The translations under genes and the position numbers were made by a program. 64,000 bases of DNA from Podarcis melisellensis (lineage: Eukaryota). The notes below the pieces were generated by a model. The model did not search any database, was not told the DNA's origin, and was given only the letters and a program-made list of their open reading frames with translations. This document shows positions 22,655 to 62,630 of this stretch, piece after piece. Positions within the stretch are counted from its first letter, which is position 1. Each line of letters starts with the position of its first letter. The stretch lies in NCBI GenBank assembly GCA_964234715.1, contig OZ174285.1; one strand, given 5' to 3'.

Positions 22655-25117
22655 GCAGCACACCCAGAGCTGGTTGGGGAAGTTGTTGTCACTCTGCCTT
22701 GTCTGTGGAATGAAAATGCAATTGGCTTGTGCGTGGGGTTTCTCATTCACTGCCCTCCACCCTCCTCCTCCTCCTCCTCCTGCCCCTCAGGGTAGTGCCT
22801 GAAATGCTCTTTTTGACACCTGCATCTCCCTCCCATGTAGGAGACCCCCCAACACCACAGACATTAGATTCTTTTTCTTGGAACAGGGGGGCCCTTCTTG
22901 GTGAAGCCTCCCTCCACCTCCTCTCCCTGCAGCTATGGTGATGTGTTTTCACCTATTCTCAAACATTTGCTTATGTAATTAAAATACTCATACTAGTGTT
23001 TCTTTACAAGTAAACTTATACATTAGTTGACTGTTTTAAAATCCCAAAACAGTATACTCAAGAATTAAAAAAGAAAACCTCCATACAGTACGTAATAAAA
23101 CAACATAGCCTCCTAATAAAAAAAACAAATCTGTGGTTGCTCAGGGGTCAGTACCGCTCATCTGAAAATGCTTAGGGGAAAAAACACGGAAAGAATTAAC
23201 ATTATTGACACAGGCCTTGTTTCCAGGGGCAGAGGGCTTGCTCCACATGGCATGGCAGATGCCACCATGCTCAAAGACCCTTCTGATGGAAGCCACACTT
23301 TAAATCAGATCAGGGTTAGCAATGAAAATCACCCCCTTGAGGTGACACATCAAATGATGGAGATGGCCTCCTAGAAAACCTGCTGAAGGCACAGTCCTTT
23401 TAAAATAACTCCCATGGGACCCCATGAGCGGGAGCTCTTGTTCACTCCCCTGTGGCGATGGGCCCAGGAGGAGGACGTTCCCCTGGGATGATGTTCTAGA
23501 GCTGTAACTGAGCACTCAGACCAAGACCCCCAGGCTCAGTCTCACCAGGAAATCAAGGTGGAGAGCCATGGCTCACCTGCTGCAGCTTCTCTCTCAGTCT
23601 CACAAACCTTCTCAAGCACAACATGGAGCAAAACCAGGAACATTTCGGGCTTTCAGGTGGTGGTCTCATTGTGGGATACTGCCCCTTCCTTCGCACATCA
23701 AGAAACATCCTCAAGGGTACTTTGTTCTGCCACATTGGTTGCCTGCTCAGATACAGATTTACTTTTGAAATGGACTTCGTCTCTCCTTTGAAGAAAGAGA
23801 GAGAAATTGATAATTGCTCTTCATTTATATTTATATTCCACCAAACAGCCAAGATAAGCACCTTCATGTGAATCCAGAAATTTCAGTGTACTGAAATTAG
23901 CCCTTTCCCCTAGCAGATGAGCAAGACTGCTTCCACCCAAGGCAGCTTAAAAAGCAGGAGATGGTGTCATTTCCAGCATGGACAATCAAATTACTCCAGA
24001 GAAGTTGAAAGCCTGTTTGAAGTTGTTCTTGGCTAAGGATGCTTCATATTCTGTTTTTTCTTCCTTATTAAGATGCATGTTGCAATTCCACTTTATGTCG
24101 GGGGGAGGAGCAGGCTGGCTGGGCGGGGGGCAAGGAACAGCTTGTTTCTGTAGAAACTAGCCCTTATATTGAATAAGTGGAAGAGAGTCTGGAACCAAAA
24201 GGGTTGTAAGAAGCAAGCCCTGTTCCATTTCTGGTGGGCAGTTTTGCCTGGGCTCTCCAGACCACAAATTCAAGTGAGGCAGAGGAGCTGCCAACTATAC
24301 CATGCAGATGCTGGAAGAGGCGTCCGGCATCCTGGCTCAGATCTGCCCTCTTCAGACAGTGCTTCTGTTAGATTGTCCTCTCTCTGTTGCTCGGTGGTGG
24401 TTGTAGCTTGTGCGTCGATGTTGTGTAGTGACTTTCCTGCAGTCCCTCCTTTGAGCTCCGCAAAAGTTGCTGGTCCTCCTTACCATTCCTACTTCATCAA
24501 CCAAAATAGAAATACTTAAGCTTGTGATCACCCTAGGCAGAGAATGAGCACTTGCAAGAACAATCTGCCAGCACATCCTGCCAGTTTGTTCCTGCTCCCC
24601 TTCCCTCTGCCCCCCAGCCCTGGGCAACTTCCTGGGAGGGACGGAGCTGCCATTCAAGCTAGAGCTTTAGTGTCCTTCCTTTCCCCTTGGGCAATGTTTA
24701 CTTGTTGTTTGTTTCAGTGGCCACCTTTTAAAATACTCCTAAATGGAAATGTTGGCAATTGTGCACACAAGGTATTTCTCAATGCACCATCGCAGATGCT
24801 TTCTCCTTCCTGGCTCCCAAATGTGCCACGACTGTCCTTTCCACTAATGTTTCCTCCCCATTCCTGGCTGGAGAGATGCTGCTTAGCTGAGGGCTCCTTG
24901 GAAGAGGTCTAGGAAGAGAGGGGAGAAGCAGGGCAGTGCTGCCTCCTGCAACCCTGCATCTCCAGTGAGCAGCTTTCCTGGGAGCCAAGAAACTCTTCCT
25001 TTAGGCTGCCCTTTACTTTGTCTCGTAAGACAAACAAGCTCGCTTGAAAGGTGCTTTTGTCTGAAGTGTCCCGATCTTGGACTGGGAGACGCTGCTCAAC
25101 CTTCTCCTGTCTTCTAG

Positions 25118-25340
25118 CTTTTGAAGACCACGATAGTGCTGTGGATGACAGAGACAGCGACTACCGCAGCGAGACCAGCAACAGCATTCCTCCCCAGTAC
25201 CACACCACCTTGCAGCCCAATGCTTCGGTGCACCAGTTCCCCGTGGCTTCCCGCCTGCAGCAGCAGGGGGTCCCCCGAGAGTGCTGTGTGGAGTCCCTGC
25301 ACGGCTATGATTTGGATTACCACGAACGAGCAGCCATCAG
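25118..25340 (+). CDS. UNC13B: UNC13B coding exon: [30 protein letters not shown]...[11 protein letters not shown]
   Basis: Acceptor ctgtcttctag| and donor |gtaggt. 223 nt, phase 1 to phase 2. [18 protein letters not shown] is diagnostic for Munc13-1/ubMunc13-2. Confidence 0.96.
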
Positions 25341-26664
25341 GTAGGTACCCCCTTGGAACCAGGGCGTTTTCTTCCCCCAACCACAAATTTATTGGCAGGA
25401 GAAACTCACCGTAAGCTACCAAGACTGGGGCTGGCTGCTTCAGACTATCTTGTGGTCAGGTTCTTAAAAGAAAAGCCATTCTGCTGCTTCAGGGGTGACA
25501 GAAGAGCAGTGAGCAACAGCTGCCAGACACGGGTCCCCCCCCCAGAATAGCCCAATGGGAGCAAAGAGAGCTTTGCAGTTGAGCCTCCTCCTTGCGAAGC
25601 AGAGCTGGTGGTAAGCAGTTCTTTTTGCTGTGGAATTTTGGGATCCCCAGGTTGTCGCCCTGAGTGACCAAGAGTGACTGACGATATGTGGATCAATTTC
25701 ACTTGAGATTGCAAGTCGTGCTGACCCTCAGGATGCCCCTCTTGCTGAGATTTGGCTTCCGTTGCCTCGCACCCATCCAGACTCCTGGCATGATTGCGCA
25801 ACCACCAGTCCCACACGCCACACACTTGCTTTCACTTTCCATTTTACGATACTAAGCTGTTTGAACCTTCTGTGTTGCTCTTGTCCTTCACGTCTCCCAA
25901 CGTCTCCTTGCCTTTTTGAAGAAGGCGCCATAGCTTAGACTCCACTGTGAGTGGCCGAACTGACCTGGAATCTGCATCACAGTCAAGTCAAATGACAAGC
26001 CGCCAGCTGTCATTAGAGAGCCGCCACTCACTAGAGGTGTCTGATAGGTGGGTGACCCTCTCCGAAGCCTCTGTGTCCGTGTCTCGTGACGTGGCTTTGG
26101 TCTGCTGGGGTTCCTGGGCTGGCTATCAGTGTTTGCATGAATACATCCTCTTCCAGGCATAGTTGCCGGCTGGCTGTTTTCTGTTGCTTCTCTTGTTTCA
26201 ACTGGGTTTTTGTTTCTCTTGAACATTTGTACCAGCCCTCTAAAGAGAGAACTGATGCAAATCATTACCTTTCCTCCATACTAGGCCTTTAGAACCTTAG
26301 ATCTATCTAATTTATCCTCATATAATTACTTTGGTTTCTAATTGTCCTGTCAATACTGTAGCTGGAGTTTTTAGGATTCATGTTTTCAACTCTGACTTGC
26401 CCATCATATCTTGTTTGTGCTGTCCACATGGTTAATGGAAGTAACCCCAAATAATAATTGGAACAGTTCCTCATTTTGCGCCTTATCAACATGATTGTTG
26501 TTTTTAATTTATTTACCTCTAGCGATAAACCACAAGTAAGATAATGGGTTTTTCCTGTTTTGTTGTTTTGTCACATTGCAAATTTAATTAATTGATGCAC
26601 TTTATTGTGTGCTTAGTGTAATAACTTATTATTAGTCTGTTGCAAATGCCCCTTCTTAAAATCA

Positions 26665-26975
26665 GGAGGTAAGAGTCCTGCTGGATCAGGCCAGTGGCCC
26701 TCCTTCTCCAGCATCCTGTTCTTACAGAGACTGACCAGATGCCTGGGAGAAGCTCAGAAGGAGGACCTGAGCTCCAGAGCCCTCCTCTCCTCTCCTCTCC
26801 TCTCCTGCAGTTTCCAGCAACTGGGGCTCAGAAGCATCTCTGCCTGTGACCGCGGAGGCAGAGCAGAGCCATCATGGCTAGTAGACTTTGATAGCCCTTC
26901 TCCCCCATGGATTTGTCTAATCCTCTCTTAATCCAAGTTGGTGGCCATCATTGCTTTCTGTGGGATAAACTCCGT
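26665..26975 (-). mobile_element. CR1-family LINE 3' end fragment
   Basis: Reverse strand of a squamate CR1 3' UTR (ctgctggatcaggccagtggccc...ccagcatcctgttc...gttggtggccatca). Similar to 58150-58339. Confidence 0.65.
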
Positions 26976-27384
26976 TGAGACGCTCCAGAAAGTGACTTGT
27001 AACATTTTAGGTAGCTGCTCATTGACATTTTTAATCCGCAATTCCTGTTCTTAACAAAAGCTTATAAATAACATACCATACATCACTTGATAGTATACAT
27101 AACACTGGTATACATGTTTCGTTCTCTCCTACCCCTACAACCCTACTATTTAGCTGCTGCAGTAATAATAAAAGAGAGATTCCTAACTTTTCATGTTAAT
27201 AAATGGATTCATTGTTATGATATTTTAATATAGTTTTTGCATGTGATTCACGATATCATTTGGTCTTTATGAAATGCTCCTTTGCAAGTTTTGTGTTTAA
27301 AGCTCTTTTTTCACCCCTCCTGCTCTTTCCTTTTTTTCTTTGCCCTTCTGTCCTTCTTATATTTTCCCCCTCCACACATATCAG

Positions 27385-30300
27385 ACCAGGATCTTTAGTT
27401 AGCAATGGGAAAGTCAGGATCATTCCATTTGATTACGAAGTTGGCCAAGAACAGGAAGAGTGTGAAGAGAACTATGAGGAATTAGGCAAACAGTTAATAG
27501 AAGATTTTTTAGAAAAAAGTCACAGGACTAGAAGTTCACAGGGACGAAGGAGCCCGAGACTCTCGAAAAGGGAGAACTTTGGCCATCCTGAAAGAGGAAG
27601 ATACTCACGGAAGGCTTGCCCAGAATCGGGAAATCCCGATGTTCCTTGCTATCCAGAGGAATATGACACAATAGACAGGAGAAGAAAGAAGAAGCTGCGA
27701 TATAACAATTTTGAAGAATGCGACCGAACTATATTGCAAAGCAGTGGTAACCGGAAATTTTCATCAGGCAGCATTAAAGCAAGAACTGAACATAACCTAT
27801 ATCCTGATTATGATGAAACTGAGAAATGGGGCAGCAGCCCCATTGAAAGTGAAGAACAGTTACCGGAATATCCAGTTCTGCGTCCATACAAGAATGGCCT
27901 TCTAGTCAAGAGTGGCAAGTTGTCCGCTAACCAACGTGCAAAGCATGACTTGGGATCAGTCCATTTTGATGGTGAAAATGAGATCCATTCAGAACAGCCA
28001 GCTCACTCTTTTGTGCCATTGGGTGCCCTTAAAGAGTTTGGCAGCTGTTCGTCCAGTGTACTCCTGTACTCCCCAGTTTCGGATGATGATGATGATGAAA
28101 TGGAAGAAATAGCAATACTTTCCCAAGCATGGCGTGAATCCAGTGTTCGCCATGTTGGAGACCTTACTGACGCCCGTACTGGAAGTGCCATATCCCTGTT
28201 ACCAAGGGACAAAAACTCACATAGGATGAGAGGAGGAAAGCACGGCTTTCTTAAGCAAGACTTGACCCTCTCTCCTGTTGAAGAGCCAACGGAAGAATAC
28301 GTGGACACAATGGATGAACTGCAGTGCTTAGTTGAAACTGTGTCTGAATACTTAGCTGAAAAAGAGGAGGAGATTAGCAAATTTGAAACCCTTCCTGCGA
28401 GCAAAAACGCAAGCGATTGTGCCTCTCCCAAACTGGCCGGTGCTGATAAGTTGGCGGAGGAAAGTGCCCCTTTGGAGCAGGCAAAGCCAGCCGCTTCTGC
28501 CACAGAGGAGAGCGAGGGCAGCAAAGGCATAACAGAGGCATTGCCAGACTTGTCTGGGGTGAAGAACACGGTCAGCTCCTTGTTTAGTTCTTTCACTGAA
28601 AAGGTGGGCTCAGGAACAAAGCACTTAACAGCCTCAGTTGAAAAACTTGTATCCCCCACACCAGAGAAATCTGAAGCCCCTGGTCAACCTGAGGGAGGCA
28701 TCACAAGTCTGTTTTCAAGTAAGCCTAAGTCTGAGGGTGCCTCTCCAGAACTGAAAGCAGAAAACAAATTGGATGCCAAGCTGTCCACTGCAACTTCTCC
28801 TTCTGTGACCCAGAGCAGCCGTGAGCGAGAAGCCGGTGATGCCAAGGCCAGCATCCCAGAAAAGACAACAGGAGATGACAAGGCTCCTCCAAGTGTCCAG
28901 GATGCTTCAGCAAACGCTGCTCCGCCCCCTTCCCTGGACCCCAGCTCAGTCGTGAACTCCGTCTTAGGCATCTTCAACCCTTTGAAAATCTTCTCCGAAA
29001 AGGAAGCACTGAAAAAAGAGACTGCAAAACAGGAGGAGGCTGTGAAGGTGGAAGCCACGCATGCCAGTGCTTCTGAAGCCAAGGCAAGTGCAAAGGCAGC
29101 TGAAGGCAACGCGACAAAACCCACCAACATTGCGCCTCCCGAAACGAGCAAGAGCGAGGCAGAAGCGAGCGCAAGCAGCGGCCCCGTCTCCTCCATCTTT
29201 GGCAAGCTGTCGAGCTCCATTAGTTCTTTTAGCTTGAAAGCCAGTTTTGAGAGTTTGGCTGTTCCCAAGCAGCCAAGTGGGCCGCAGAAGGCTCCTGATG
29301 CGCCGCCGCAGGCCACAAGTCAGCCAGATAAAGTTGTTAAAGAACACCCAGACATGCCAAGAAATCCACAACCTGCAGGGAAAGTGCCAGAAAACAAGCC
29401 AAGTGAAGCCAAGAAGGAGGCTGGTACCGCTCCGCCGTTGGAGCAGGGGGAACCATCTGAGAGCTTTTTCAGTCCACTTAAGAAATCCTTCAGCCAGATG
29501 CTGCTCCCTTCTTCTGCTACCGAAACTGTGCCAAAGGAGCCACCACCGGGCTTGGGGAAAAGTCACCGTTCTGAAGATGATGTCAGGAAAACGAGCTCCG
29601 CAAGCAGCGAACCCAATTTCCCTTTCACCGGTAAACTCCAGATTCCCTTTTTGAGCGGTTTTGGCTTTTCAGACAAACCACCGCAGGACAACAAAGAGAA
29701 GCCAGGAATTTTCACTTCCTTCTTGAAAGCTGCTTCTGTGGAAAACCTGACAGCTTCAAAAGATCAAACTGCCCCACCAAGTTTTAGTGGCAAGCCACCA
29801 AAGGCTGAAGAGGGTCACAAAAGCAGCAACGCGGAAGCTGCCAAAACAGAGTCGTCAAAGTCTCAGGCAGTTCCCGAGGCACCGCAGAGAAAAGAGGAGC
29901 CGGCGAGGAAGAAAGAAACCAGTAAAGAAGATGGTCTGGGTGCACCAAAAAGTGGAGATAAAAAGCAGGGTGCCTCAGACACTTCAAGAATTGCGCACAT
30001 GGATCATGATACCAAAGGCATGGGTGCTCTGGACCACAAAGATTCCAAATGCAGGGGGGAGCTGGCAGCCCCCACAAAAGAACCTGACTTAAATACGACA
30101 GCAGGAAAGCCAGTGCTTCCTGGTGGAATCAGAGAGGACCAGGCAATGGATGATACGCCGAATAAGGCCCCACAGCCAGGGCAGGGGTTGCTCTCGGGCC
30201 TCTTCCGGCGGCCGTCTTCAGACCACATAACCCACAGCGAAGAGTCGAATGCTAAAAATGAAACGGACAGCCAGAAGAGCAGATCAGCTGGCTTACTTTC

Positions 30301-33300
30301 TGGATTATTTAGGTTTGCTTCAAGTGAAAACCTGACCGAAAGTATGCCAGATAAGGCAAAATCAGGCTCTCTGGGCATAATGAAGTTTTTTGAGAGGAGC
30401 GAAGAGCCTAGTTCTGGTGACAAGTCCGTTGGCTCACATGTGACTCCCGGTCCCCAAGAAAGCACTGGGGGGAAACCGGAGACAGGCAGCTTCATAAAGA
30501 ACTTCATGCAGAGGCCAAAAGAAAAAGTGGAGGAGGCAGTGACCGAGACTGCGAAGGCGAATGGTCATTTGCCTCACCCAGAACTGAGCAAGATGGAGAA
30601 CGGACATGGTGTCGTCCCTTGGCATCCCCCCTCTCAGAATGCTTTAAGCTCACAGCCAAAGATACAAGACTTATCGGGGCAGCGAACTCTTTATAGACAA
30701 CCTATGGATTCCAATATTTATCAAGCAGTTCTCAACGAAAGGTCAAATGAATTTCTCAATTCCTCTTTGCTGAATGCTAAATTGCGTGGCCACTCAGAGC
30801 AGCATCTTGCTCTTGAGGAAACAAGGAGCAGCCCCTCTAGCTTTGACTGGGAATATGATGCAGGAGCATTTTCTCTTAACGCCCACCAGGTTTCCTTGCC
30901 AGTTTACTACGTCTTGCAGCAGAATTCTGTCCCACTGGCTGAGTTTCTGGAATGGCCAGACTCCAGTGACGCTGCAGTGAACTTGTGTAAAAAAGATGGC
31001 AATGCCAATGTCGTGGATTGGAGGTCAAATGCAAATTTTGATGCTCTGAGCATGGATTTCAGTGTCATGTCCCACGAATCGTTTGATCAGTTAGACTTAC
31101 AAGATTTAGGTCTAGAAGAAACTGAAATGTGGACAACGCATTCTCTGAATGGAAACTTTCCTCCATTTGATGACTGCAGCTATATTTTGGAAGAGATGCC
31201 CATGGACTTAAGCTATTCGTCAGCATGTGATGGCAATATGTGGACCTTAATTGATCAGGAGTCCTTGAGCCTGGATGGCAGTTTTGTCTATTCATCTTAT
31301 AGCCAGGAGTACCAGGACTGGCTGACGCTGCTTGAGAAGGGCGTGTGGTGGCCATCGGAAGATGGCGATTGTGGATATTACATGTACAGGGACGGTCAGT
31401 TTGTTTATTCTCTGCTCACCGACCCCACTGGGCAGTATGTCTACATTTGCACTCCTGACACTTACACCTACCCAGACTACTGGGATTATAATTATCCGCA
31501 GAGCATTTTGCAGAGCTCTGTCTTGGAAGATGACATGATTGCCGTTTGCGGTTTCAAAGTGCCTCTTGGTAATGAAGACGAGTTATTCTGGTTTGCTGAA
31601 GAGGAGCAATTGGATAATTACTCTGTAAACAAACCACTTGATTTGTCTGTAGCTCTGCAGAGAAGTGATCAACTTATGAACATGAATTTAGAGACCTTTT
31701 CGCAGATGTTTGAGGAGTCCATTTATTACCAGAGAGAGCAGCCTTTAGACTTTTCAGGGTACAAACTTCAAAAACTCAAAGTAGACTTTAGGCCTGAGAA
31801 TGACATGGAGTGGCGCTCAGAAGAGCCTCCCCTGACCCTTGACCTTAGAGTTCACTCCAGGGTGGCTTCCAGCGGGAGGCTAAAAGATGATGCTCTACCC
31901 AAACATCTGGACAGGACTCCTGCTGTGACAGTTTCCGAAAGTGCACAGTCAAGACGGTTTGGTTTCCATATATTCCAGTCTTCTGCCAAGCCGGAGCCTT
32001 CATCGGCGTCTCAGAGTGTTACAGAAGTCAAAACCACTGAAGAAGATAAAAAGCCACCTCTGAATAAAGTTGCATCTTTATTCTCTGCTTTGGGTGGCCT
32101 GATGGGTAAGGGTTTGGAAGCACATGAGACAGTGGAAGACGCGGCTGTGAAGAAAGGAGAACCGGTGGTGTTGGGACACAAAAACGATGCTCTTCCAGCT
32201 ACGCCACCCAGGAAAACAGGAGAGGATATCCAGCAGCATACTGAGCATGAACAAGAGAGAAATGAGAGAGGCAGATTAGTTAAGTCTGTTAGGGATGAAA
32301 AGCCAGTGATTTCTCAGAAAAAGCCTCAGCTAGTGAGGTCTTCCTCTCAGCTCAGCCAGGGTCCCGTGGACAGCAAGACCAGTCAGCTGGATCAAAGTGT
32401 TAAGCCTGCTCCCCTCCCAAGTCAACAGAAACCCAAAGTGGGTGTGGATGAACCCAAGAAAACCCAGCCAGCCCCCAGCCAAGCGCCCACAGAGGCTGAG
32501 GGCACGTTGTTTAAAAGTGCTCTCAAGATTCTCAGCCTGGGAGAAGACTCCTCCACAACTGCAGCACCCAATAAAAGTCAAGGCCCCGGGTTCTTTGATT
32601 TCTTTAAAACGCAGGTCAACAAAGCCCCACAGCCACCACCAGCACCCCAACCAAATCTGCCGAAAAATGAAGCCGAGAAGAAAATGCCTCAGGAGAAAGT
32701 GGAGCCCCCAGGCATTTCATCATTCTTTGGTTCCATAGGGGATCTTTTCAAAGTCGATGCCGCCCCTGCCCCACCAAGTGCCGCTGCTCCACCAAAGAGT
32801 GGAACCCACACCTCCCTGAAACCGAATGACAACGCAGACCAGCGTAGCAGAGAGCCAAGTAAGAGCAGCGCTCCTGCTCCTCAAATCCCCGTGGAGCAGG
32901 CTCGTGGGGAAGCTGCCCAGAAGCCCGCAGTCCCTAAGGAAGAACAGCATGGGAAAGTAAGCAAGGAAACTGCTCCAGCGAAGAAGGAGGACATCCCCAC
33001 TGCAGGGAATGCAGAACCCAAGCCTCCCGTGCAGGCAGGCCCTCGAATGGACCAAGCAAATCGCTCTCCAGGGCAGCATGGCCACGGACCAGCTGTTGCA
33101 CCGGGACCGCAAGGCCATGCAGGAGCCATACCTGGTAAAACTCAGCCAGGAAAAGCCAGTCAGCCACCCAGGGAGTCTGGGTTTAGCCTGCCTTTTGGCT
33201 TGTCGCAGGCAGCACCTTCTAAGCCTCCGCAGGCACCACAGCCGGCTGGCAAGAGCATCTTCTCCTCCTTCTTTGGTGCCCCAGAGAAAGCCCCTGCCCC

Positions 33301-36229
33301 AGCTCCAGCAGCTCCTAATGCCAAGCCCCCGGAAGCAGAGGGTCTGTTCAAGATGCCTTCTTTCTTTTCTGGAGGGCCCACCGCAAAGAAGAACATGCCT
33401 CAGAGCAGCTCCAGCTTCAGCTTTTTCAACCTGACCTCCTTCCTGGATGACAAACCACCAGCAGCTGCTCCTGACAAGGGGAATATTGCAAAGCCACCTC
33501 AGCAGCAAGCAAGCAACCTGGGAAGGCCGCCTCAACAGCAAGCAGACGCAAAGCCATCTATGAAGCAGTGTGTTTCTGTTGACTCTGGCATTGGACTTGC
33601 CAGACAGCAGGGCTTGAAGGATAAAGAGGCAGCGGAGGGTGTTATAGAAGCAGTACTTGGAAAGCAAGAGGCTGTTGGCCCGGAGCACAAGGCAAGTGAG
33701 TTAAAAACTCCTGCGGCTGAGCATGCTGCGGCAAGTGCTTCAGAAGTAAAAAATGAGGTAGAGATACCTTTTGTGGCCAGTAAACCTCCTGATGATGGTA
33801 CAGATAGAGAAGACCACTCAGTCTATCCTGATCCTGGCTCTCAGGTCCCTACGCTGCAGGAAGACATTGCACCTTCCCTTCCGGAGATTCCACAACCAGA
33901 GGAGCAGCTGCAAGACAATGCAGAAAAGAGTGGTGGTATTGTGGTGTCCTCTGAGAAGGAATTTGTTCCTTTAGTTGGGAACGAGACTTTTGAAAAGGCA
34001 GAGCCCGGTCCAGTTTGTGATGAGACCTCTGTGGCTCTTGAGCCATCTCTTGCTCCTGGAGACCTTTCACAGGAGGTTGTACCTGAAGAAAAACCAAGCG
34101 CCCCTGAAGTCAAGCCCCCGGAGCCCAAGCAACCTGATAGGACCCCAAATACTGCAGGAGAGCAGCAGGCTCAGGGCCAGAGGCCTCTCCCTCAAATGGC
34201 AGCAGCAACACCTAACCTGCAGGAGAAACCTAAAGAACCTGAGGCTGACAAATCAGTTCTAGATTCCTCAGTTGAAATGTTTTCCAGCTTCATGACGAAG
34301 ATGAAACCAACCAAAACATTATCTGGCTTCTTTTCCCAGCCTCAGACTCCAGCAGCTCCTAGTGCCCAAAAGAAGAGCACTTCGTTTTTCGGCCTTTCCT
34401 CCCTGCCCACTGGGCCTCCTCCAGCATTCACAAGTGATCTCTTTGGCATTTTTAAAGGAGCAGCAGATGAGACCCTTTCAAAGCCTGCAGGGAAGACCGC
34501 AGGCACTTCAAAAGCCCAGGAAATGAGCTCCAGGGCAAAGGAGGCTGTGGGCCCAGTTCTTGGTAAAGGTCTCGCAAAACAAGATAAAGCCTCTAGGGAT
34601 CAACTTTTAGGGACAAATGCCGGCAGCGTTTTGAAACAACCCGACCAAACCTCTAGGGCTGAACCTACAGAGAAAGAAGCTAGCAGTGACTTGAAACAAG
34701 ATGCCTCTTCTGCTTTAGCAGGTGAGAGTTTGGGGAAAGAATGTAGGGCAGAATTGGAAGCTGAAAGCAGTGGAAGACCTGAACATGGTCTGGAACCCTC
34801 CCTGAATGCTTCAGAAACTTTAGACTCAAGTAGGGATCAGGGCCCTGAAGTGGTACAGCTGGACACAAACTTACTGGCATCTGATGAAGCAGGGAAGGCT
34901 GCCCCGTATAGTCAAGAGGTACATGATGCAGCTGAGACGGTGGTGCTGCAGGAGAAGAGTGAAGTGCCTGTGGAGCCCTTAGAAAATGATGCTGTCCCTG
35001 CTGTTGAAGAAGAGCAAGTGAGCCCAGCAGGAGAAACAGACGTTGGCCAAATGGATTTGGACAGTACACATGAGCTGGAACCCAAGGTTGGTGAGGAAGA
35101 GGAACACCTGAAACTGCCAGAACTGACGGATACTTCACTAACCACTGAAGAAGTAACTATAAAGAATGAGGCAGATATTGATATTTGCCCACCAGACACG
35201 TTTGAGACCCTGGAGATGGAACCCAAAGCTGCTGCAGATGAGGCCCATGACTTGCCCCATCAGGATATAGAAAAGGTCCCTGAAATAAAATCTGATCTTC
35301 CTCCTGAGCAGAAGGAGCCTCTAACCATCAGCGAAGCAGCCCCAGAAGCTGCTCCCTTGAAAAGCAGTTTGGCTGGTAAGAGCAAGCCAGCCAGTGCTCC
35401 TGCAGAGGCCAGCAGCACCAAGCCCATGTTTGAAATTCCAAGCATGCCCACTTTGCCCAAATTCGGCTTCATGTCTTCTGCAGACAGCAGCAAGCCATTT
35501 GGCTCCTTCTTCTCTGCACAGCCGCCTTCGGCAAGCAAGCCTGCGCCTGAGCCAGGCCTCGTCTCCAGCTTCAACAAGTTTTCCTCAAGTCTGTTTGGTG
35601 GAGGAAGTGATGAGAAAGCAGGTAAAGTAGAGGGCACTCCGGGTGCTGTCTTTGGAAAGAAGCTGGACTTCTCATTTCCGTGGCAGAAAGATGCCAAGGA
35701 GGCAAGTCTCAAGAAGGAACCAGATGTGCCAACACCAAAAGCTCCCTCCAAACAGGAGGCGGCCCCAATTGCTTCATCCAAACTAGATTTGAAGGCACCA
35801 GAAGTTCTCTCGAAAGCCGAGGAACAAGCAGTGGATGTGGCCGGGGCTGACGGGAGCCCAAACCTCTCTGCCTCTGACCAGCCAGCCGACAGTGCTGCTG
35901 ACTCAGACCTTTCTTCTAAGCAGCCTGACAGCAAGAGCAACGAATGCTTCGATGGTCCCACACCTGACATTCCGCTTGCGCCCAGCAAGGAGCTGGAGCT
36001 TGAGGTCCCCAGAGAAACGGAAGATGAGCCAAGCACCATTTCCAGTGAGCCTCCTGGGCTCCCTTTGGAGGAACCAGCAGAAGGCGCCACACAGGTTCTG
36101 GATGAAGTAGAGCAGAAGGAAAGTGTCCCTTGTCCAGAAACGGAAACACTTGCCACTGGACTGCAGCCGGCGGAGCAGAGTAGCCCTGAGCCACTCAGGA
36201 AGAAAAGGCCAGTAGCCAAAACAGCATGA
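27385..36229 (+). CDS. UNC13B: UNC13B giant exon (~2,940 codons, mostly disordered). It ends either at a GC donor after 36207 (internal cassette) or at TGA 36227-36229 (terminal).
   Basis: Uninterrupted ORF 27260..36229. A long pyrimidine tract and tcag| acceptor at 27384 give phase 2, matching the upstream donor (AG|A = Arg). An 8.8 kb stop-free frame is not expected by chance. Confidence 0.92.
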
Positions 36230-36729
36230 TAAATGGTGCCAACTTGTGAGCCATTTATAATGCAAGTGCCGTAACAGTAGATGCCTGACCTCGTAGATCA
36301 GACTCCTCTAGGCTGTGTTTGGCATTAGTAGTACCCAGTGGTAGGTAGAGTTGTGAACACTAGTTGCTAGACTGCCCACCCAGCGCCTCTCTTGCCCTTC
36401 TCCTTCTCAACTTCTGGCTTCCTTTGTTCCAAAAGGCTGCGATGACTCTTCCCCTTTGCTCTCCTTTGTGCTGTGTCCTTGTGAGTGAGCTGCTTTGAGT
36501 ATTAGTTTCATTAACCTTCTGTAGCCTGATTGTGTGCGTGAGAAAACAACTTGCACCTCTAGATGACATGGTGGGAGGGAGGAAATTGGGGGCTCTCTTG
36601 GTTTGCAGAAAGCTTAGTTAGACAACATACAAGGCATTCACGTTTTAAGGTGGGAGAGAGACCCAGATGGCAGCAAAAGCTGTTTCAGTGGTTGCAGTTC
36701 AGTCACCTGCAGCATAACTTTTCTAACAC

Positions 36730-36937
36730 CCAGAAGGGGATTCTGACTAAACATCAGGAAAAACTGTTGAACAGACTCCCTAGGGAGTTGGTGGATTCTC
36801 CTTTCTTGGAGGTTTTTAAGCAGAGGTTGCCTGGCCATCTGTCATGGATTCTTGAGCTGTGATTCTTGCATTTAGGGGGTTGGACTGGATGACCCCTGGG
36901 AGTCCCTTCCAACTCTGCCATGCTAAGATTCTGTGAT
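36730..36937 (+). mobile_element. CR1 LINE 3' end fragment
   Basis: NRLPRELVDSPFLEVFKQRL C-terminus, followed by cccttccaac...gattctgtgatt. Confidence 0.8.
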
Positions 36938-38212
36938 TAAAGCCTCCTCCCTCCCACCAGGAGGAGTTAAACATGGCTGTTGACTATTAAAGGTACCAAT
37001 GCAGAAACATCTAGTTCTTGCTGCTCGGAAGCCGTTACTGCCCAGCTAACATGATTCAGTTTTTCTCTACTTTTACCAGCTGTATTCAGCGGCATTAGCT
37101 GAATGTGCTTTTCTGTGTTAGGCTGCAGGTCTCCAAGCAAGCTGATAACTGGTTTTCTGGTTTACCATATCTCAAAAACATGTTTTTTTAATTCCATATT
37201 GAAGAGAATTGCAGTGATTTCATGTTACAGCTATCAGTATATTAGTGACTTTTGCTCCCTGTTTACCCCTGTCCAGGGGATGATTGGGGCCGGTGTTCTT
37301 GCTGCCCCTCCCTAGTTACAGAACTGCTCGTCACTAAAATCATTGCTAAATCTGCACTCCTCACCCGCCACCTCTAGACAATTGGCCCAGCAGGGATCCT
37401 GCTTCAAGCATTTCCCTTTCTGCCCAGCCTGTTTTCCAAGGAATAGATGGGATTTTCGCAGTGTAGCTGCCTTGGGTCCTCTTGCAGCTGTCTCTGCCTA
37501 TGTGGGCTGCCAAAAGCCAGGCGGCACTTAAATAGCGGCCCAAAAGCATTTGTGCCCCTTCCCTCTTAGAATTCCACAATGGAGAGAGTGTGTGTGGGTG
37601 TCTTGTTGAATTAACTCCAACCTTATAATAATCAGTCACTCCCAAGCAGCAACAGCAATGGGCCCTTGTTGTGCTGGAAGAGAGGGCTGATTTTTCTAAA
37701 CGGCAGCTACAACAGGATCCATTCTCAGCCACTGGAGAAACTTAAGAATGTGTTAATGAAATGGGAGTGAAGATGAAACCCTCATGTCCTAGAATCCACG
37801 CGCAGTTGACATGCTAGGGGCAAACATTGTTGTAAGAAGGTGTTGAGCTTAGCAGCTTAGAAGTTCAATGTGCATGAAACTTTTGCTGCCATTCTTAATT
37901 TTCCTATGGCCTGTAAACAATTTACAGGATGCGCAGCAGATGATGCTATCTGTTTCTGATTGATATATCAATAGGGTCCAGAGGCTTAGGCCCAGCACAA
38001 AAATTGCAAACACAAATTTGGAAGTGGCGGGCGACTGAGAACAGTGGCTGCAATGTGCAAGAGACATTTGCTTGGCTAGAGTTTCCATTTGATGCTTTGG
38101 CCAGGTGTAGTTAGGATTTGCGCTCTCTCTCTCTCTCTGTGTGTGTGCATGCATTGTGCTGTTTCCTGGTTGCCAAGACCTTTTGACTTACTAATGCTTT
38201 GCTCTCTCACAG

Positions 38213-38509
38213 TCCTGCCAGCAGTAGTAAGTTTGGTTCCTCCTGTAACATCAGTCAGGGAAGCTCTCAGCTGAGTGAGCTGGACCAATATCACGGGAGT
38301 GTGCCCTGCTCCGAACACGAGGACGAGCTCACAGAAGGAGTGCCTGCTGCTGCTGCTCCTCACCCAACAGAGGGCCCTGCACCATCTAGTGAGCAGCACG
38401 AGCCCCAGGAAGTGCACAGGGAAGGAGAGGGGAAGGTGAAAGAACATGCCACACCTCAACTACCTCCTGAAGTGGACGAGCCCAAAGAAGCCACAAAGAC
38501 ACCGGGCAG
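38213..38509 (+). CDS. UNC13B: UNC13B coding exon: (S)[27 protein letters not shown]...KTPG
   Basis: Branch point tactaat, acceptor ctctctcacag|, donor |gtaggt. 297 nt, phase 2-2. [20 protein letters not shown] matches ubMunc13-2. Confidence 0.93.
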
Positions 38510-54100: not shown

Positions 54101-56700
54101 GCCCATGCTCTCCAGGCTTATGAGCCGGGCATGAGAGAGGAGCCCGGAGGCCTTGTTGCTGATCCCTGGCCTCAGGTTCTCCAGAGCGAGACGGCTGCCA
54201 AAGACAGATGGAAAACCTACATTAGCCCATCTTCCATGGCTAATAGCTTTGCCCGTGTCTATCAGTCAGATTCGTGTCCGCCTTGAAAAAAGCTTCCCCA
54301 GCCATTTCCCCACATGGTGCCTTGCGGTGGTGAATTTTGTGTGTGAGCTCTGTGTTGTGATTTCAGTCAGTTTACTTGAGTGATCCTTAGCATTAGGAGA
54401 CAAGGAGTGTCTTGCTGTTTAACTCTTGTTGATCGATGTTTCCAACTTGATTGGCTTTCCCAGGAGCTACAATTAGCTATTTCAACATCTTAATGGCTGC
54501 ATTATTGCAAGGCAACAGTATCTTTGACTGGATCAGCTTATCTTCAAATGAGTTTTTCTGGGCCCTTAATACCAAAGGAGCATCCTTTATCACCTGAAAG
54601 CTGGTTAGCAGGCTTGCAAGGCTAGCTAGGCAGATACACATTTTCACATTGTGCAGCCTTCTTGAATGCTATTTTGAGAGTCTACTGGAGGAAGATCTCA
54701 GCAGAAGAGAGACTCTTTCCTTCTCCCACCCTAGATGTGCTGCTGCTATCCATCAGCCCCCCACAGGTGGGGTTGGAGTTTGGAGTGCTTTTATAAAAAC
54801 TCCCCTTCTCTGCCCCTTGTTGCTGTGGTGGTTGCTCAGGGTATCTGATCAGCTGTATGCTGCAGCCACAAGATCCAGTTTGATTGCTGCTGAGATGAGT
54901 TTAGGACCAGAAGAAATCCTAAGGTCAAATCCTGACACTGCCCTCCATGTTCCCTCCCTGCCCACTGTTGGACTGGCAGAGAGCTGAAAGCTATAAATCC
55001 CCTCCTCCACCTGCCATTTCCTAAACTTTGTTGCTTTGGCCACGATTCTCCTTCTCCAAGCTTTTGTCTTCTCCAGGAACACAAATATCCTTGGGGTGTC
55101 ATAGAATTCCAGACTCAAAAAAGGTATTTTTTTAAAAAAGAGTAATTGGTTTGTTGTGATTCCATGATGCCCAGAAGTTTATGCCCCCAGATAGGACCCC
55201 CCCCCATTTTCTCAATTTTTATTTTTTTATTATTGACTGCTTTCCGTAGGTCCCCTGCTGTAATACCATGCTGCCAAGAGGTGGGGGTTTTTCATAGCTC
55301 CTCAAGACCCGCCCATCCATGTGCCCTTTTGAAAGATGCCCATGGTGTGCTCTGCTCCCCCCTTTGATATGCTACCCCCCGAGGGCCAATGTGGTTCTCA
55401 GCCTGCACACAATTTAGCCACCCTGATACAGAGCATGTGATGGCACCCAAAGGGGCTGCACCTTGTTTTCCCTTGTGCTCCCTGCTAGGTCTCTGCCACC
55501 TCCTTGGCAGCAATTTGGGGTTTTGCTTGCTGACTCCCTTGTGGCTCATTACAAATGATGTGGCTGCTGGACGGTGCCCTCTGCCTGTCAGGCCAGCTTT
55601 GAATAGCAGGGGCTTGTAGGCGGGGGCTCTTGTGGGGTGCCCCACAGCTAAGGAGCTGCCTTTCTCTGCTGACTGCAAAGCTTAAACATGAAAAAATAAA
55701 GTATTTCCTTTCTGGGACTGATCTTAGTGCTTTTAACAACTTAGAATGTTTTTATTGCATGTTTTCATAAACTGCTTATCCAGCCTGAGCTTCTGGGGAT
55801 AAGCTTTTTTTTGCACCCGTTCCCATTATGGTCCTTAACGGTTTCCGTGGAAGTTGCAAGCCCAGCAAACTTCAAACAAGGTTTCTAGCGATAAATGCCT
55901 CTCTTCCTGCCCCCCACTCCCAAAGCAGTGCATCTCCTCTAGGGAGATTGTTCCTGTACTTGGGCTGAGGTGTGAAACTTCATCTAGGAGGCAGCCATCT
56001 CTTTCCAATGCCTGTGTCTCCAGGCCTGCCCCCTCTGCTCCAATGTGCTTAGTCACTTAGAGATAGTTAGTCTTCTTTGACACTGGAAATGAATGGCTGC
56101 TTACTCTGTGGGCTGAAACGGTGTCACTGTCATTGATGTGTCCTCAGAAGAAACGAGATTTTGCAGGGCAATGCCGCTCGCCCTCAAGAGAAGAACACAC
56201 AGCTGAGTAGCAGGCCGATCCTGCAGACACCTTCTAAACAGTCCGGCGGCTTTTTCTCTTAGACAAAATTGAAGCTTTTTCCATCAGAAAAAAAGTTGTC
56301 TTCTTAATTATTAAGATTTCCGCCCCAGCCTTCCAGTCCGTAGTCAGAAAAGTAAGCAGAAAAGCAGACAGCTTTCAGTAGAACTGGGAAAGAGACGGTG
56401 CTTCACACATTACGCTGCTCTGGGATTCTGAATACCGTGCATGGAAAAGTGGGTTTTGTTTCGCTGCTCCAGCAGTTTCTGAATGGAGCTGAGTGTCGGC
56501 GACCCCCTGTGCTGAGCCAGGCTGGGGGGCTTGCTGGAACAGAGAGACCCCTCTTTGAGGAGGGTCCTTGAGCATCTGAAGCTGAGGAATGCAAATCCAC
56601 ATAGGAAATACCGCCTGCAAGGGTTTCTACCTTGGGCAGGGTGAAAAGTAGTGTAGGAGCCGGAATAATGTCGAAGGGGTGCATTTAAATGCTTGTGTAA

Positions 56701-58045
56701 GGGACCATTTGGATCCTTTCCAGTCGGGATTCAGGCCTCATCATGGGACTGAAACTGCCTTGGTCGCACTGGTTGATGATCTCCGGCGGGCTAGGGACAA
56801 AGGTGAGAGCTGTTTCCTAGTTCTGCTGGATCTCTCAGCGGCGTTTGATACCATCGACCATAACATCCTTCTGGACAGTCTTGAGGGGCTGGGAGCTGGG
56901 GGCACTGTCCTACAGTGGTTCCGCTCCTTCCTCCTGGGCCGTGTTCAGAAAGTGGTGGGGGGGGATGAGTGTTCAGACCCCTGGGCTCTCACTTGTGGGG
57001 TGCCTCAGGGTTCTGTCCTCTCCCCCATGCTTTTCAACATTTACATGCAGCCACTGGGAGAGATCATCAGGAGGTTTGGGCTGGGTGTTCATCAGTATGC
57101 AGATGATAACCAGCTCTACCTCTCTTTTAAATCAGAACCAGTGAGGGCAGTGAAGGTCCTGTGTGAGTGTCTGGAGGCGGTTGGAGGATGGATGGCGGCT
57201 AACAGATTGAGGCTGAATCCTGACAAGACAGAAGTACTGTTTCTGGGGGACAGGAGGCGGGCAGGTGTGGAGGATTCCCTGGTCCTGAATGGGGTAACTG
57301 TGCCCCTGAAGGACCAGGTGCGCAGCCTGGGAGTCATTTTGGACTCACAGCTGTCCATGGAGGCACAGGTCAAATCTGTGTCCAGGGCAGCTGTTTACCA
57401 GCTCCATCTGGTACGTAGGCTGAGACCCTATCTGCCTGCGGACTGTCTCGCCAGAGTGGTGCATGCTCTGGTTATCTCCCGCTTGGACTACTGCAATGCA
57501 CTCTACGTGGGGCTACCTTTGAAGGTGACTCGGAAACTACAACTAATCCAGAATGCGGCAGCTAGACTGGTGACTGGGAGCGGCCGCCGAGACCATATGA
57601 CACCGGTCTTGAAAGACCTACATTGGCTCCCAGTATGTTTCCGAGCACAATTCAAAGTGTTGGTGCTGACCTTTCAAGCCCTAAACGGCCTCGGTCCAGT
57701 ATACCTGAAGGAGCGTCTCCACCCCCATCATTCTGCCCGGACGCTGAGGTCCAGCGCCGAGGGCCTTCTGGCGGTTCCCTCATTGTGAGAAGCAAAGCTA
57801 CAGGGAACCAGGCAGAGGGCTTTCTCAGTAGTGGCGCCCACCCTGTGGAACGCCCTTCCAGCAGATGTCAAAGCAATAAACAACTACCTGACATTTAGAA
57901 GACATCTTAAGGCAGCCCTGTTCAGGGAAGTTTTTAACGTGTGATTTTACTGTATTTTTGGTTTTTATGGAAGCCGCCCAGAGTGGCTGGGGAGGCCCAG
58001 CCAGATGGGCGGGGTATAAATAATAAATTATTATTATTATTATTA
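56701..58045 (+). mobile_element. 5'-truncated L2-clade LINE (RT domain plus 3' UTR), relatively young
   Basis: RT motifs QSGFRPHHGTETAL, LLDLSAAFDTIDH, GVPQGSVLSP, YADD. One premature TGA at 57786-57788, after which the frame continues to RAFSVVAPTLWNALP...LKAALFREVFNV* (57944). (TAT)n tail and 8-bp duplication ttgtgtaa at 56693-56700 and 58046-58053. Confidence 0.93.
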
Positions 58046-58821: not shown

Positions 58822-60283
58822 TGGACTTCCTGGCTCTGCTCCGAGTGCCTGTTCCTCTCCTCCTCCTCCTCCTCCTCCTCCTCCTCCTCCAGGACCCTTC
58901 ATCACCCACTATTTTACCCCTATTTATTTTTAAGGAACAACTGCAAATGTTAACTCTCGCCAGGTTTATGGTAAATCTTTCTTACCGATGCAAGATAATA
59001 GTTACAGAAACTGGCTGAGTTTCTTGCTCACTAGGCCAGTCACAGTTGGTGTAGAATTATGTAATTGTCCAAGGTTTCAATTCTGTGAAACCTTGAATAT
59101 TTCTCAGTTGCGAGGAGGTGGCCCAATAAAAATGTCTTCTGTATTATATGCGTATCTCATGCCACTCGTGCCCACTGGAGGAACAGCAAGGAAAGAGGCA
59201 CCCATCTTCTTCCAAACCGCTTAAGTTTTTTTGCGCAATGAAGAGGCATGCAAATTTTGTTAAAGTCATAAAAAGAAGTGCATTCCTGCCGCCAAGGAGA
59301 TTGCAATCTAACCTTCAGCATGGGGGGGAGGGGGAGAATGTTCTGTTCACTTGCCTGTATCTTCATTAAGGGATGAGGACTAAGTGGTTGTGCTGAGCCT
59401 TCCCTTAACTGATTTTAGGATATTAGCAGATGACCTTAAAGCTATAAAAAGAAAGCTTCTGTGTGCAGGCAAGGCCTTATCTGTCTGTTCTTTCATCATT
59501 TTTCTTGTGAAAATGATAGCTGCACACAGACAAATCTGTGCCCATACAAAGACGTACCTTGAAGCTGGAACTGGCTTGTGCCTGCGCCTCTTAGGGAGCA
59601 GGGCAGAGCTGCTGGCTGCATGCCAAGGAGCACTTTGGGCAGGTAATGGATAGGCCAGGATATGGTACCTGAGGGGATAAATAGAGAGGGCTCTGCTGCT
59701 AAGACTTCAGTTTTCATAAAATTCCGGTCTCCGTGGTGGAAAAGGAAACCATTCTCATAAAGCAAATTTGGGGGGAGGTGAAGGGATCCTTTACTTGTTG
59801 CAAGAGTCAGGGAGACCTTCCTGCTCACCACTTGGCCCCAGGACCTTCATTCAGTTGGAAGGCTGAAATGGAACAGCAGGTTATACCGGCATGCTTGCAA
59901 AAATAGATTTGTCCTGCTGCACGGGTGCAATTTTGTTGGATTACGTGGCCCAAGTTAGTGTGTGTGTGTGTGTATGTGTGCGTTGCTTTTTTTCCCACTG
60001 ACTCCGATACACAGCGTCTCTGTCCCTTCTCTAGACAGCAGCTTCTGATGAGTCTTAATCCTTGGCCGAGAGAGCCTTGCTGGGCGGGCAGCAAGGGGCA
60101 CAGGCCTCTGCCACTTTGTGGCATGATGAGAGGGCGCCAACACGGCCACTGAGGATGTGTGCGAGCAGAGGCACCCTAAGGCTAGAAGATGACATTGCTT
60201 CTGTGCTTAGAACGTCTGCTGTGAAACTCCTAACTGGGCAGCCCTCTCAGAAGCAGAAGGCCCTGCTGTTTCTGGAGGAGAAG

Positions 60284-62630
60284 ATGAAGAAGCTTCTGCA
60301 AGGGCCAGCGAGCGAGCTCTCCCTGAGCCAGAATCACCACCAGCAGCTTTCCCTCGTTGAAATAGAAACGGACGCCTTTGTCTGTGGCGTCAATAGGAAA
60401 TCTGCAAGCAGTGACTTTTCCGCTGCTCAGGGGAGGAGCCCTGGGACCAGGGAGGCCAGTAATGGTGGGCTGGACTGGGATGGATACATCGAAGCCCCAC
60501 GGGCGTTAGTTCCAAGCCAGTGTGACTTAGGGGGCGTCTCCGGCCGCCTGGCCTCAGAGAGCCTTCTGGAGCAAATGGAGAGCCCCGAGGAGCAAGCCGA
60601 TCTCGCTGCCCTGAGCCTTGGCACCAACTGGAGGGGAGTTGCTGGGGAAAGAGAAGGGGAAGGGCCCTGCCCTCCAAGCAAGCCCCTCGCCTACACTCCC
60701 TGCAGCCCTGGGCCCAGAGACCGCTCTGCCGATGTCATTGAGTACATCGTGAAAGAGCTCCAAGGGATAAGTCGCATCCAGACCGAGATTGCTGAGCTCC
60801 AGCAGCACCTCACCTTGATCAAAGGCTCCGTGGACGAAGTCTCCAGCTGCGTGGACACTGTTCTGAGCGAGATTGAGGGCCTGCAGAGCAGCTCTGGCCC
60901 CACCAGCAAAAACTCCCCGTTGCCAAAGGCCAAGGCCAGGGAGCCCCTCCTGGGAGGGCCCATCAGAGAGCCAGTGTTGTATTTTTATGGCATCCCAGAG
61001 CAGGAGGGGGAGAACACCAAGGAGCTAGTCCACCGTTTCTTGTCAGAGTACCACTGTTTCAATGGCATTCAGCGTAGCAAGTACATCAAGGATGCTTACA
61101 GATCTGGTGCAGCAACAGGCAAGCAGCTGGCCCCACGACCCGCTGTTGTAAAGCTTGCTAACGCTGAGCAGCGAGACTTCATTCTCCAGAAATCGATTCT
61201 TTTGCAAAGTGCAGGAGTTACCATTGTGGCCAGCAGTGAGCAAAGCCAGCAGAACGGCCAGGTGGGTCCTGGGGCACAGCTGGGCACCTTGCCCTCGCCA
61301 GGCCAGAGTGGGAACCACTGGGGCTCCTTGCACATTCGTGGGGAAGTGGTCAGGACAGATGGAGATGGGCAGCTCCAGGTGGACTCTTGCCAGGCTCAGC
61401 AGGAAAACGCTTGCCAAGAGGTTCACCACCGCGTAGGGGAGAGGCTTAACTTTCAACCGAAATCCACCCTACCTAGGAAGAGCAACTTAATTGCTGAACT
61501 TGAAGAAAAAGTGGGGAGAGTTGTACAAATAATGGGCACTAGTGAGCAGACTTTGCACAGAAGCAGCTCTTCCAGTGGAGTCCTTGATGCGTCCCACAAG
61601 AAGCTGGAAGGCCCTGGGCATGAGAACAAAGGCAGGGATTCCTTGCCATCCCCGGAGTGCTTGGGCAAGGTGCCCGCCTTGTGTGAGGGAGGAGGGGGAC
61701 GTGCTTCAGATGCTGAAAATGCCACCAAGGGCAGCTCCTCTCCTGTGGAAGAGGACCAAGCAGGAGGGCTGACTCCAGGGGAAAGCGAGACGGACTGTGA
61801 TGCCACCACGCTGGAGTTTCTCAGTCCTGAGCAAGTCAGTCTCCTGGAGGAGGCACCGGTGGCCATGACCACTCCCGGCTGTGATGGTGCTCTGCGCAAA
61901 TTGGTTGACAGCAGTGAGACGCTCAAAGACATGATCCAGATTGACCTGAACGAGCAGGACCCAACCGATCAGGTCTTCAGGGATGTCCTAGAAAATTCCC
62001 AGTACTTCCTTGAGCACTCTCGGGACAGCATTGATCTCGTGGACATGAGGTTTTACACTAACAAACTGGGCAAAGCACTGAATCACTTCCGGTCTGCGCT
62101 GCAGGTGGTGTTCCACAAACTGGAGACCGGGGACCCAGAAGTCCTCCTTGAAGGGGAAAAGAGCTTCCATATGAACAGTGAGCCAGCTCCTGCCCTCCGT
62201 AGCCCAAGTGTGCACGGCAGCTTGGATACCTTTGCTGAAACGCCCCCTAGTCAGTCTTCTGAGAGCCAGGCTAACACGACTGTGAGCAGTGACAGTGTGG
62301 GCCTGATGCAGAGGGCTCTTCCCAGTGCTTCATTGCCTCTTGATGAAGCTCCAGTCCCTGACCTGGTGCCCCCACCGGATTCTGAGAGCTGTGTGGAGCA
62401 GCCCTTCCCCTCTGGAGAGGCCCAGCAGGATCCGGGTTCTGCGCCTGTGCAGCCCGGCGGGTGCCGACCTATGAGCCTCGAGAAGGTGTGTGCCGAGACC
62501 ATCTACCTGAACAAGTGCATCAACAACTTCAAGAATGTCCTGAGGGAAAAGAGGCAGATGCGTCGGAGGCTCTTGAAGGAAGTGGCCCAGGAGGCAAGCT
62601 GGACTTCCTCGGCTGAAGAGATTCATTCAG
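60284..62630 (+). CDS. UNC13B: UNC13B large exon encoding the brain-type bMunc13-2 N-terminus (MKKLLQ...; coiled coil; two CaM-binding helices)
   Basis: ORF 60062..62662. MKKLL start, DVIEYIVKELQGISRIQTEIAELQQHL, KLGKALNHFRSALQVVFHKLE and SLEKVCAETIYLNKCINNFKNVLREKR match rodent bMunc13-2 as recalled. Phase-1 donor CAG|gtactc at 62630. An in-frame upstream ATG exists at 60155. Confidence 0.9.

Follow-up and report, generated by a model that had tools for sequence, protein, structure and literature searches.

The stretch of DNA analyzed here (the window) comprises 64,000 nucleotides (nt) from the lacertid lizard Podarcis melisellensis (assembly GCA_964234715.1, contig OZ174285.1) and carries the 5' half of UNC13B, the gene encoding Munc13-2. 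Within this gene we found a giant optional exon that ends at a GC-type 5' splice site and is followed, about 20 nt into the intron, by a conserved element predicted to form a hairpin. Munc13 proteins are essential vesicle-priming factors of synapses, in which C2A is the RIM-binding domain and MUN the priming domain. The GC donor and the element behind it are conserved far beyond lizards, and RNA-like contigs of close relatives contain both a form that skips the giant exon and RNA that reads through its donor. Coordinates are window positions unless a contig or protein handle is given with them, and the ubMunc13-2 exons and the donor, hairpin, and poly(A) elements described are on the + strand.

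The explanation that we favor, and consider probably though far from certainly correct, has three outcomes. In the first, the giant exon would be skipped by joining 25340 to 38213, giving classical ubMunc13-2 as the main form. In the second, the giant exon would be included and its GC donor joined to 38213, giving a full-length giant Munc13-2 of about 4,500 residues. In the third, the exon would be included with the donor unused, and translation would end after 7 codons; the RNA itself would end inside the intron, in lacertids probably after ATTAAA hexamers about 730 to 780 nt downstream, and the product would be a protein of about 3,200 residues with C2A and a disordered tail, lacking C1, C2B, MUN, and C2C. 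The main choice is between skipping and including the giant exon, and the decision at the donor concerns only the including minority of transcripts. With a weak GC donor terminating an exon of 8.8 kb, this final splicing step would be slow or conditional. We infer that the second and third outcomes compete, that the hairpin tips the balance between them, and that the third yields a mature, translated mRNA.

The giant exon and its GC donor

As read from the sequence, the giant exon (27385-36207) sits in the ubMunc13-2-specific 5' half of UNC13B, within an open reading frame (ORF) that spans 27260-36229. It begins at an acceptor reading atcag/A, where the slash marks the splice site, and is 8,823 nt or 2,941 codons long with phase 2 at both ends. 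A search for Pfam domains in the giant exon found none. The nearest database protein is isoform X1 of UNC13B from Zootoca vivipara, which is 88% identical over the end of the exon and matches at 88 to 100% across the upstream exons at 150-25340, including the N-terminal C2A exons, in a tblastn comparison. The upstream ubMunc13-2 exon (25117-25340) ends in ...GCCATCAG with a strong donor, CAG/GTAGGT. Downstream of the giant exon lies an intron of 2,005 nt (36208-38212), which would serve as the 3' untranslated region (UTR) in the read-through form and which closes with the acceptor ctctctcacag/T, its AG at 38211-38212. The next ubMunc13-2 exon (38213-38509; 297 nt, acceptor cacag/T, donor CAG/GTAGGT) then joins 38966. 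This exon is open only if it is entered with two bases from the preceding exon, AG/T giving Ser, and the other two frames reach stops within 5 and 19 codons.

The GC-type donor occupies 36203-36213 and reads AAAAG/GCCAGT, with 36207 the last base of the exon and GC at 36208-36209. The intron termini are GC...AG, those of a U2-type GC-AG intron. A U12-type intron was ruled out, as the intron begins GCCAGTAG and not /RTATCCTT. If the donor is not spliced, translation runs through 36208-36232: an Arg codon starting at 36206 is followed by PVAKTA (together RPVAKTA), and the stop, TGA at 36227-36229 with TAA at 36230-36232 directly behind it, is reached 7 codons past the donor. An earlier note, made on this stretch from its letters, had described an exon of this length, a phase-2 GC donor at 36207/36208 joining AG/T in frame to 38213, TGA TAA 7 codons beyond it, and ATTAAA hexamers at 36936 and 36986; every one of these coordinates holds. 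The same note had reported no strong phase-2 GT donor at the end of the ORF, and this too was borne out: within the last 1.5 kb of the giant exon no phase-2 GT site matched more than 5 of the 9 consensus positions or had G at -1, and the GC site, with 6 of 9, was the best candidate.

The homologous donor was GC in all eight species that we read as DNA. The note had raised the question of whether orthologues carry GT or GC at this position, and the answer was GC in 7 of the 7 other species fetched. Zootoca, painted turtle, and Xenopus laevis have AAAAG/GCCAGT, as here; a bird contig and two teleost-like contigs have AAAAG/GCTAGT; and the Tasmanian devil has AAAAG/GCCTGT, such that AAAAG/GC..GT is invariant across the alignment. 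Dozens of orthologue gene models have read-through tails with Arg-Pro or Arg-Leu(CTA), which implies GC in many further species. The spliced form requires AG as the final two bases of the exon, and a read-through Arg-Pro therefore means AGG CCN, that is, a GC donor. The donor is ancient, retained since before the split of teleosts and tetrapods.

When compared to the U1-complementary consensus MAG/GYRAGU, the lizard donor matches at -3, -2, -1, +1, +4, +5, and +6. Position +3 is C or T in all eight species, which places a second mismatch directly beside the C at +2. GC donors normally compensate the +2 mismatch elsewhere in the site, and because a pyrimidine stands at +3 everywhere, this donor is predicted to be weak even for its class.

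A conserved element with a predicted hairpin behind the donor

Conservation does not stop at the end of the exon. A conserved block extends from the donor through an AGTAGAT motif (36196-36282), and the 80 nt past the donor are more conserved than the exon. Among lacertid, turtle, bird, marsupial, and frog sequences, mean pairwise identity was 0.75 at the donor and 0.70 at intron positions +19 to +62, compared to 0.34-0.43 over the final 180 nt of the exon and 0.28-0.37 deeper in the intron. The block contains an AU-rich predicted hairpin (36224-36263) with stop codons in every frame, its arms at 36224-36237 and 36250-36263 pairing over 14 positions with one internal mismatch around a 12-nt loop. 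The same hairpin was predicted in all five amniote species folded, with shuffle z-scores from -0.09 (Zootoca) to -2.4. Its loop varies freely between species, and its arms are almost invariant. At the top of the stem, turtle, bird, and Tasmanian devil have a U-A pair, the lacertids U-G, and Xenopus C-G, so that pairing is kept; the Xenopus loop is shorter and closed by an additional A-U pair, and in one teleost-like contig the internal mismatch has become G-C. Across the alignment 88% of cells were paired, versus 25 to 49% when the partner was slid by 1 to 3 columns. A search of 36000-38300 against Rfam returned no family at E<=1.

The 5' arm holds the stop codons together with a hexamer that resembles a poly(A) signal. 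This hexamer is AATAAA in bird, turtle, Tasmanian devil, and Xenopus (at +21 or +22), and GATAAA in the lacertids and the teleost-like contigs. A different frame runs through these nucleotides of the block in Xenopus and voles (...IING...), and the stop that ends the tail comes later there, though still within the block. Because the nucleotides are kept under a different reading frame, selection appears to act on an RNA element and not on the tandem stop, and we rejected the tandem stop itself as the selected feature. The hairpin was first identified in this analysis and is absent from the earlier note, which had pointed out the tandem stops; these are not the conserved unit, which is the hairpin/AAUAAA element that contains them. 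The hairpin is our best candidate for a control element, which could act by hiding the AAUAAA/stop arm or as a factor site that helps or hinders U1, and we consider it the part most worth experiment.

Two further features lie at the distal end of the block. AGTAGAT (36276-36282) is a second small invariant motif, 13 to 20 nt past the hairpin in all the amniotes and in Xenopus. Immediately ahead of this motif, the 3' arm passes into GCAAGT (36262-36267), a sequence that resembles a GC donor.

We also looked for signals at which the read-through RNA might end. Two ATTAAA hexamers (36936-36941 and 36986-36991, at +729 and +779), common to Zootoca and this lizard, are candidate poly(A) signals for the read-through form. 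The hairpin hexamer at +21 was rejected as the main lacertid signal; it is GATAAA there, and the contigs of the relatives run 300 to 600 nt beyond it at unchanged depth. Positions 36542-37022 contain a highly repeated element (core 36753-36939), over which contig depth reached thousands in all four contig sets described below. The segment is missing from one relative's contig (X8, which joins 36541 to 37023) and present in Zootoca. Both ATTAAA hexamers fall inside it, and therefore the lacertid poly(A) candidates may be lineage-specific and transposon-derived.

Contigs, gene models, and the competing explanations

Four sets of database contigs covered the region; they come from three studies and represent two close relatives, at 3-4% divergence from the window. 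We took these to be RNA as a guess; in such contigs rare forms are lost, and neither poly(A) ends nor strand can be read from them. They are RNA-like in that exon 38213-38509 is spliced at both ends and the intron past 38509 is uncovered. The contig with this exon continues upstream into the end of the 25340 exon and downstream into 38966, and loose ends before 38210 in X1, X3, and X5 likewise match the end of the 25340 exon. The depth of the 25340-38213 contig was about 10 times that of the giant-exon contigs, which is only indicative, as contig depth cannot rank gene parts. The skipping form itself is shown by these contigs, and the depths point to it as the main form.

The giant-exon contigs, in turn, cross the donor unbroken (X1, 33200-36500; X3, 35672-36818; X8, 35909-36541), which favors read-through as the most frequent outcome for RNA that includes the exon, within the contigs sampled. 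Beyond the donor the sets behave differently. In X3 the exon was covered at a depth of 19 to 25 and depth was zero over 36940-38061, the coverage ending near the ATTAAA hexamers. In X1 the intron was covered to 38102. The contigs are compatible alike with a composite terminal exon and with a retained or detained intron. Near the far end of the intron, about 60 nt upstream of the acceptor of the 38213 exon, is a (CT)n(GT)n microsatellite (38114-38156) at which contigs break and whose length could affect the polypyrimidine or branch region of the GC-donor intron.

Joining of the giant exon to the following exon was instead found in natural database proteins. There the full-length giant models join at exactly the same Lys/Ser in eagle, owl, falcon, crow, pigeon, box turtle, and Anolis sagrei, and likewise in voles, deer, muntjac, stickleback, and medaka. 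Truncated models with KR[P/L]V... tails occur among squamates in Zootoca, Pogona, a skink, a gecko, and the garter snake, and also in painted and softshell turtles, many birds, and the Tasmanian devil; amphibians and teleosts add truncated models in axolotl, Xenopus, herring, an eel, and medaka. Both model classes occur in medaka and in voles. Isoform X10 of Aquila has 4,539 residues, isoform X1 of Arvicola 4,261, and the medaka pair 5,066 and 4,881, while the truncated isoform X1 of Zootoca has 3,208 residues with a C2 domain only, and is the sole giant-exon product that we found on record for that lizard. The tails run mostly 6 to 10 residues to the stop across vertebrates. The earlier note had asked whether orthologues keep the nearby stop; in Xenopus and vole the frame differs and the tails are 16 to 23 residues long.

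Some models depart from both classes. Those of Phrynosoma, Anolis carolinensis, and bobwhite quail run a few codons past the site and then splice nearby, and these junctions resemble artefacts that arise where a pipeline accepts only GT. In the Tasmanian devil (L003, 4001-12274), painted turtle (L005, 3001-11145), and Xenopus laevis (L006, 2501-10072) the giant exon, homologous to 27385-36232 here, is annotated as a single-exon "uncharacterized LOC" gene inside UNC13B, and by model names the same split annotation appears in garter snake, softshell turtle, and axolotl; this separate gene is probably a split caused by the GC donor together with the size of the exon. Full-length models of Patagioenas (P0012, 3,393 residues), Oreochromis (P0082, 3,468 residues), and Leptodactylus (P0071, 2,996 residues) carry only part of the giant exon, which suggests internal alternative splice sites or partial inclusion in some species.

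Several observations weigh against the three-outcome explanation. The contigs come from related species, their RNA nature is a guess, and their poly(A) ends and strand are invisible. The full-length and truncated products of other species are automatic models and not sequenced complementary DNAs. No 36207-38213 junction was seen in any lacertid data, including the four contig sets of the relatives, in which rare forms are dropped; that the donor is used in lacertids is for this reason argued from its conservation. Among short database fragments, a query with the corresponding piece of a turkey model (P0023:2715-2875) returned nothing that spans the junction; what it matched were ORFs of genomic type, a single read-through fragment, and forms that skip the exon. 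X1 covers the intron to 38102 at a depth of 16.5, compared to 19 on the exon. The lacertid and teleost-like hairpin hexamer is GATAAA, and lizard RNA runs past it. Covariation in the hairpin is thin, with two pairs showing one double change each and 29 of 500 shuffles reaching the observed score, and the second teleost-like contig is without the hairpin; because the double changes are few and this contig lacks the structure, we regard the hairpin as likely but not proven.

The strongest alternative, to which we assign a real but clearly smaller probability, is that the intron is merely slow or detained. The GC donor would then be constitutive for exon-including RNA, and the read-through RNA would be incompletely processed nuclear RNA or a substrate of nonsense-mediated decay, in either case without a stable protein product. 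An exon of 8.8 kb is hard to define, and the role of the conserved element would be to enhance its splicing or to detain the intron. The coverage of X1 resembles retention more than early termination, and unspliced or detained pre-mRNA fits its whole-intron coverage as well as a long 3' UTR does. GC donors are known to splice slowly (PMC3167603), and phase 2 is kept at both exon ends in all species, as expected of a true cassette exon. The gap in X3 despite its exon depth is nonetheless what would be expected of RNA ending in the intron. Moreover, short stop-terminated tails are retained in every lineage, and the truncated product is among the NCBI pipeline models of many species, Zootoca included.

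It is also conceivable, if improbable, that in lacertids the giant exon is simply an alternative last exon and the GC site an unused relic overlapping the conserved KRPV codons. We found no full-length giant model for Zootoca and no junction in the four contig sets, as this would predict. The missing junction is, however, weak evidence when the contigs drop rare forms; the donor, phase, and acceptor are intact in the lizard, and the model of a neighboring squamate, Anolis sagrei, carries the junction.

Finally, the earlier note had allowed that the C at 36209 might be a sequencing error or private variant of a normal GT, or that another donor is used constitutively, and either is refuted by conservation, with no observation in its favor: GC is invariant at the homologous site in the seven other species, dozens of models have Arg-Pro or Arg-Leu(CTA) tails, and neither a competing phase-2 GT site in the last 1.5 kb of the exon nor a joint from within the exon in the relatives' contigs was found.

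We therefore return to the three-outcome explanation. A switch between full-length and MUN-less isoforms, as the earlier note had proposed, is plausible but demonstrated only in part: the donor is ancient and used in orthologue models, MUN-less models exist, that of Zootoca among them, and read-through contigs were found, but the lacertid junction from 36207 to 38213 was not. A bolder extension, which we offer as speculation and consider unlikely as it stands, is that the hairpin has served as a gate for over 400 million years. With its AAUAAA/stop arm hidden or exposed, or with a cell-type-specific factor bound, it would set whether the RNA is spliced or ended, and with that the ratio of priming-competent giant Munc13-2 to a MUN-less C2A protein that might tether or compete at specialized synapses such as ribbon synapses.

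Gene context and comparison with known systems

Further 3' in the window is a large ORF at 60062-62662, whose position 3' of the ubMunc13-2 exons fits that of the bMunc13-2 first exon. The intron that precedes this first exon carries, at 56679-57788 and on the gene's own strand, an insertion of the long interspersed nuclear element (LINE) type, whose ORF encodes a reverse-transcriptase domain (RVT_1, E = 3e-31).

The isoforms discussed here are not new to annotation, as both products already exist as automatic NCBI/Ensembl models of UNC13B or unc13bb. A literature search, which also covered the use of terminal exons in UNC13B, turned up nothing published on the giant exon or its GC donor, and nothing on the truncated form or the hairpin. 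If the three-outcome explanation is true, a C2A protein of about 3,200 residues without MUN, beside a full-length form of about 4,500 residues, would be an unstudied active-zone scaffold or competitor, in a protein family of which one member, ubMunc13-2, is reported to localize to the arciform density in the ribbon synapses of photoreceptors. The GC donor and hairpin would also offer a clean, mutable test case for very large exons and weak non-canonical donors. The arrangement probably also accounts for the annotation of the exon as a gene of its own, and for the GT donors that some pipelines force nearby.

Compared to GT donors, GC donors are weaker, splice more slowly, and are enriched in alternative introns (PMC3167603, PMC7242645), and conserved GC-AG introns are known from human to zebrafish, for example in ABI3BP and NDUFAF6 (PMC7242645). 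Such donors usually offset the C at +2 with a stronger remaining consensus (PMC3167603). The UNC13B intron is like those of ABI3BP and NDUFAF6 in having a U2-type GC donor at the same intron position across vertebrates. It is unlike typical GC-AG introns in the pyrimidine at +3 of its donor in all eight species, and in the T at +4 in the Tasmanian devil.

In composite terminal exons splicing competes with polyadenylation, as in the secreted/membrane switch of the immunoglobulin M (IgM) heavy chain and in calcitonin/calcitonin gene-related peptide (CGRP). The UNC13B arrangement is similar in that a suboptimal 5' splice site is followed by poly(A) hexamers in the same intron and the two routes give alternative C-terminal parts. 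It differs in that the nearest AAUAAA, in most lineages, lies only 21 nt from the donor and is enclosed in the arm of a hairpin, and in that lacertid RNA passes the GATAAA found there instead; the UNC13B poly(A) signals, moreover, are predictions made from sequence.

The closest parallel is Piccolino, a variant of Piccolo that arises when Pclo intron 5/6 is left unspliced (Regus-Leidig et al. 2013, PMC3735604), and the earlier note had described Piccolino accurately in drawing the analogy. The RNA, the protein, and the ribbon-synapse specificity of Piccolino were demonstrated by reverse transcription PCR (RT-PCR) and an antibody to an intron-encoded peptide (PMC3735604), whereas the truncated form of UNC13B is known from gene models and from the contigs of relatives. 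In both, the gene encodes an active-zone scaffold, an unspliced intron gives a conserved in-frame stop soon after a very large exon, and the N-terminal part is kept while C-terminal functional domains are lost, in UNC13B as judged from sequence and models. Unlike Piccolo, UNC13B has at this step a non-canonical GC donor conserved to teleosts, a conserved predicted hairpin adjoining it, and an exon that is itself optional.

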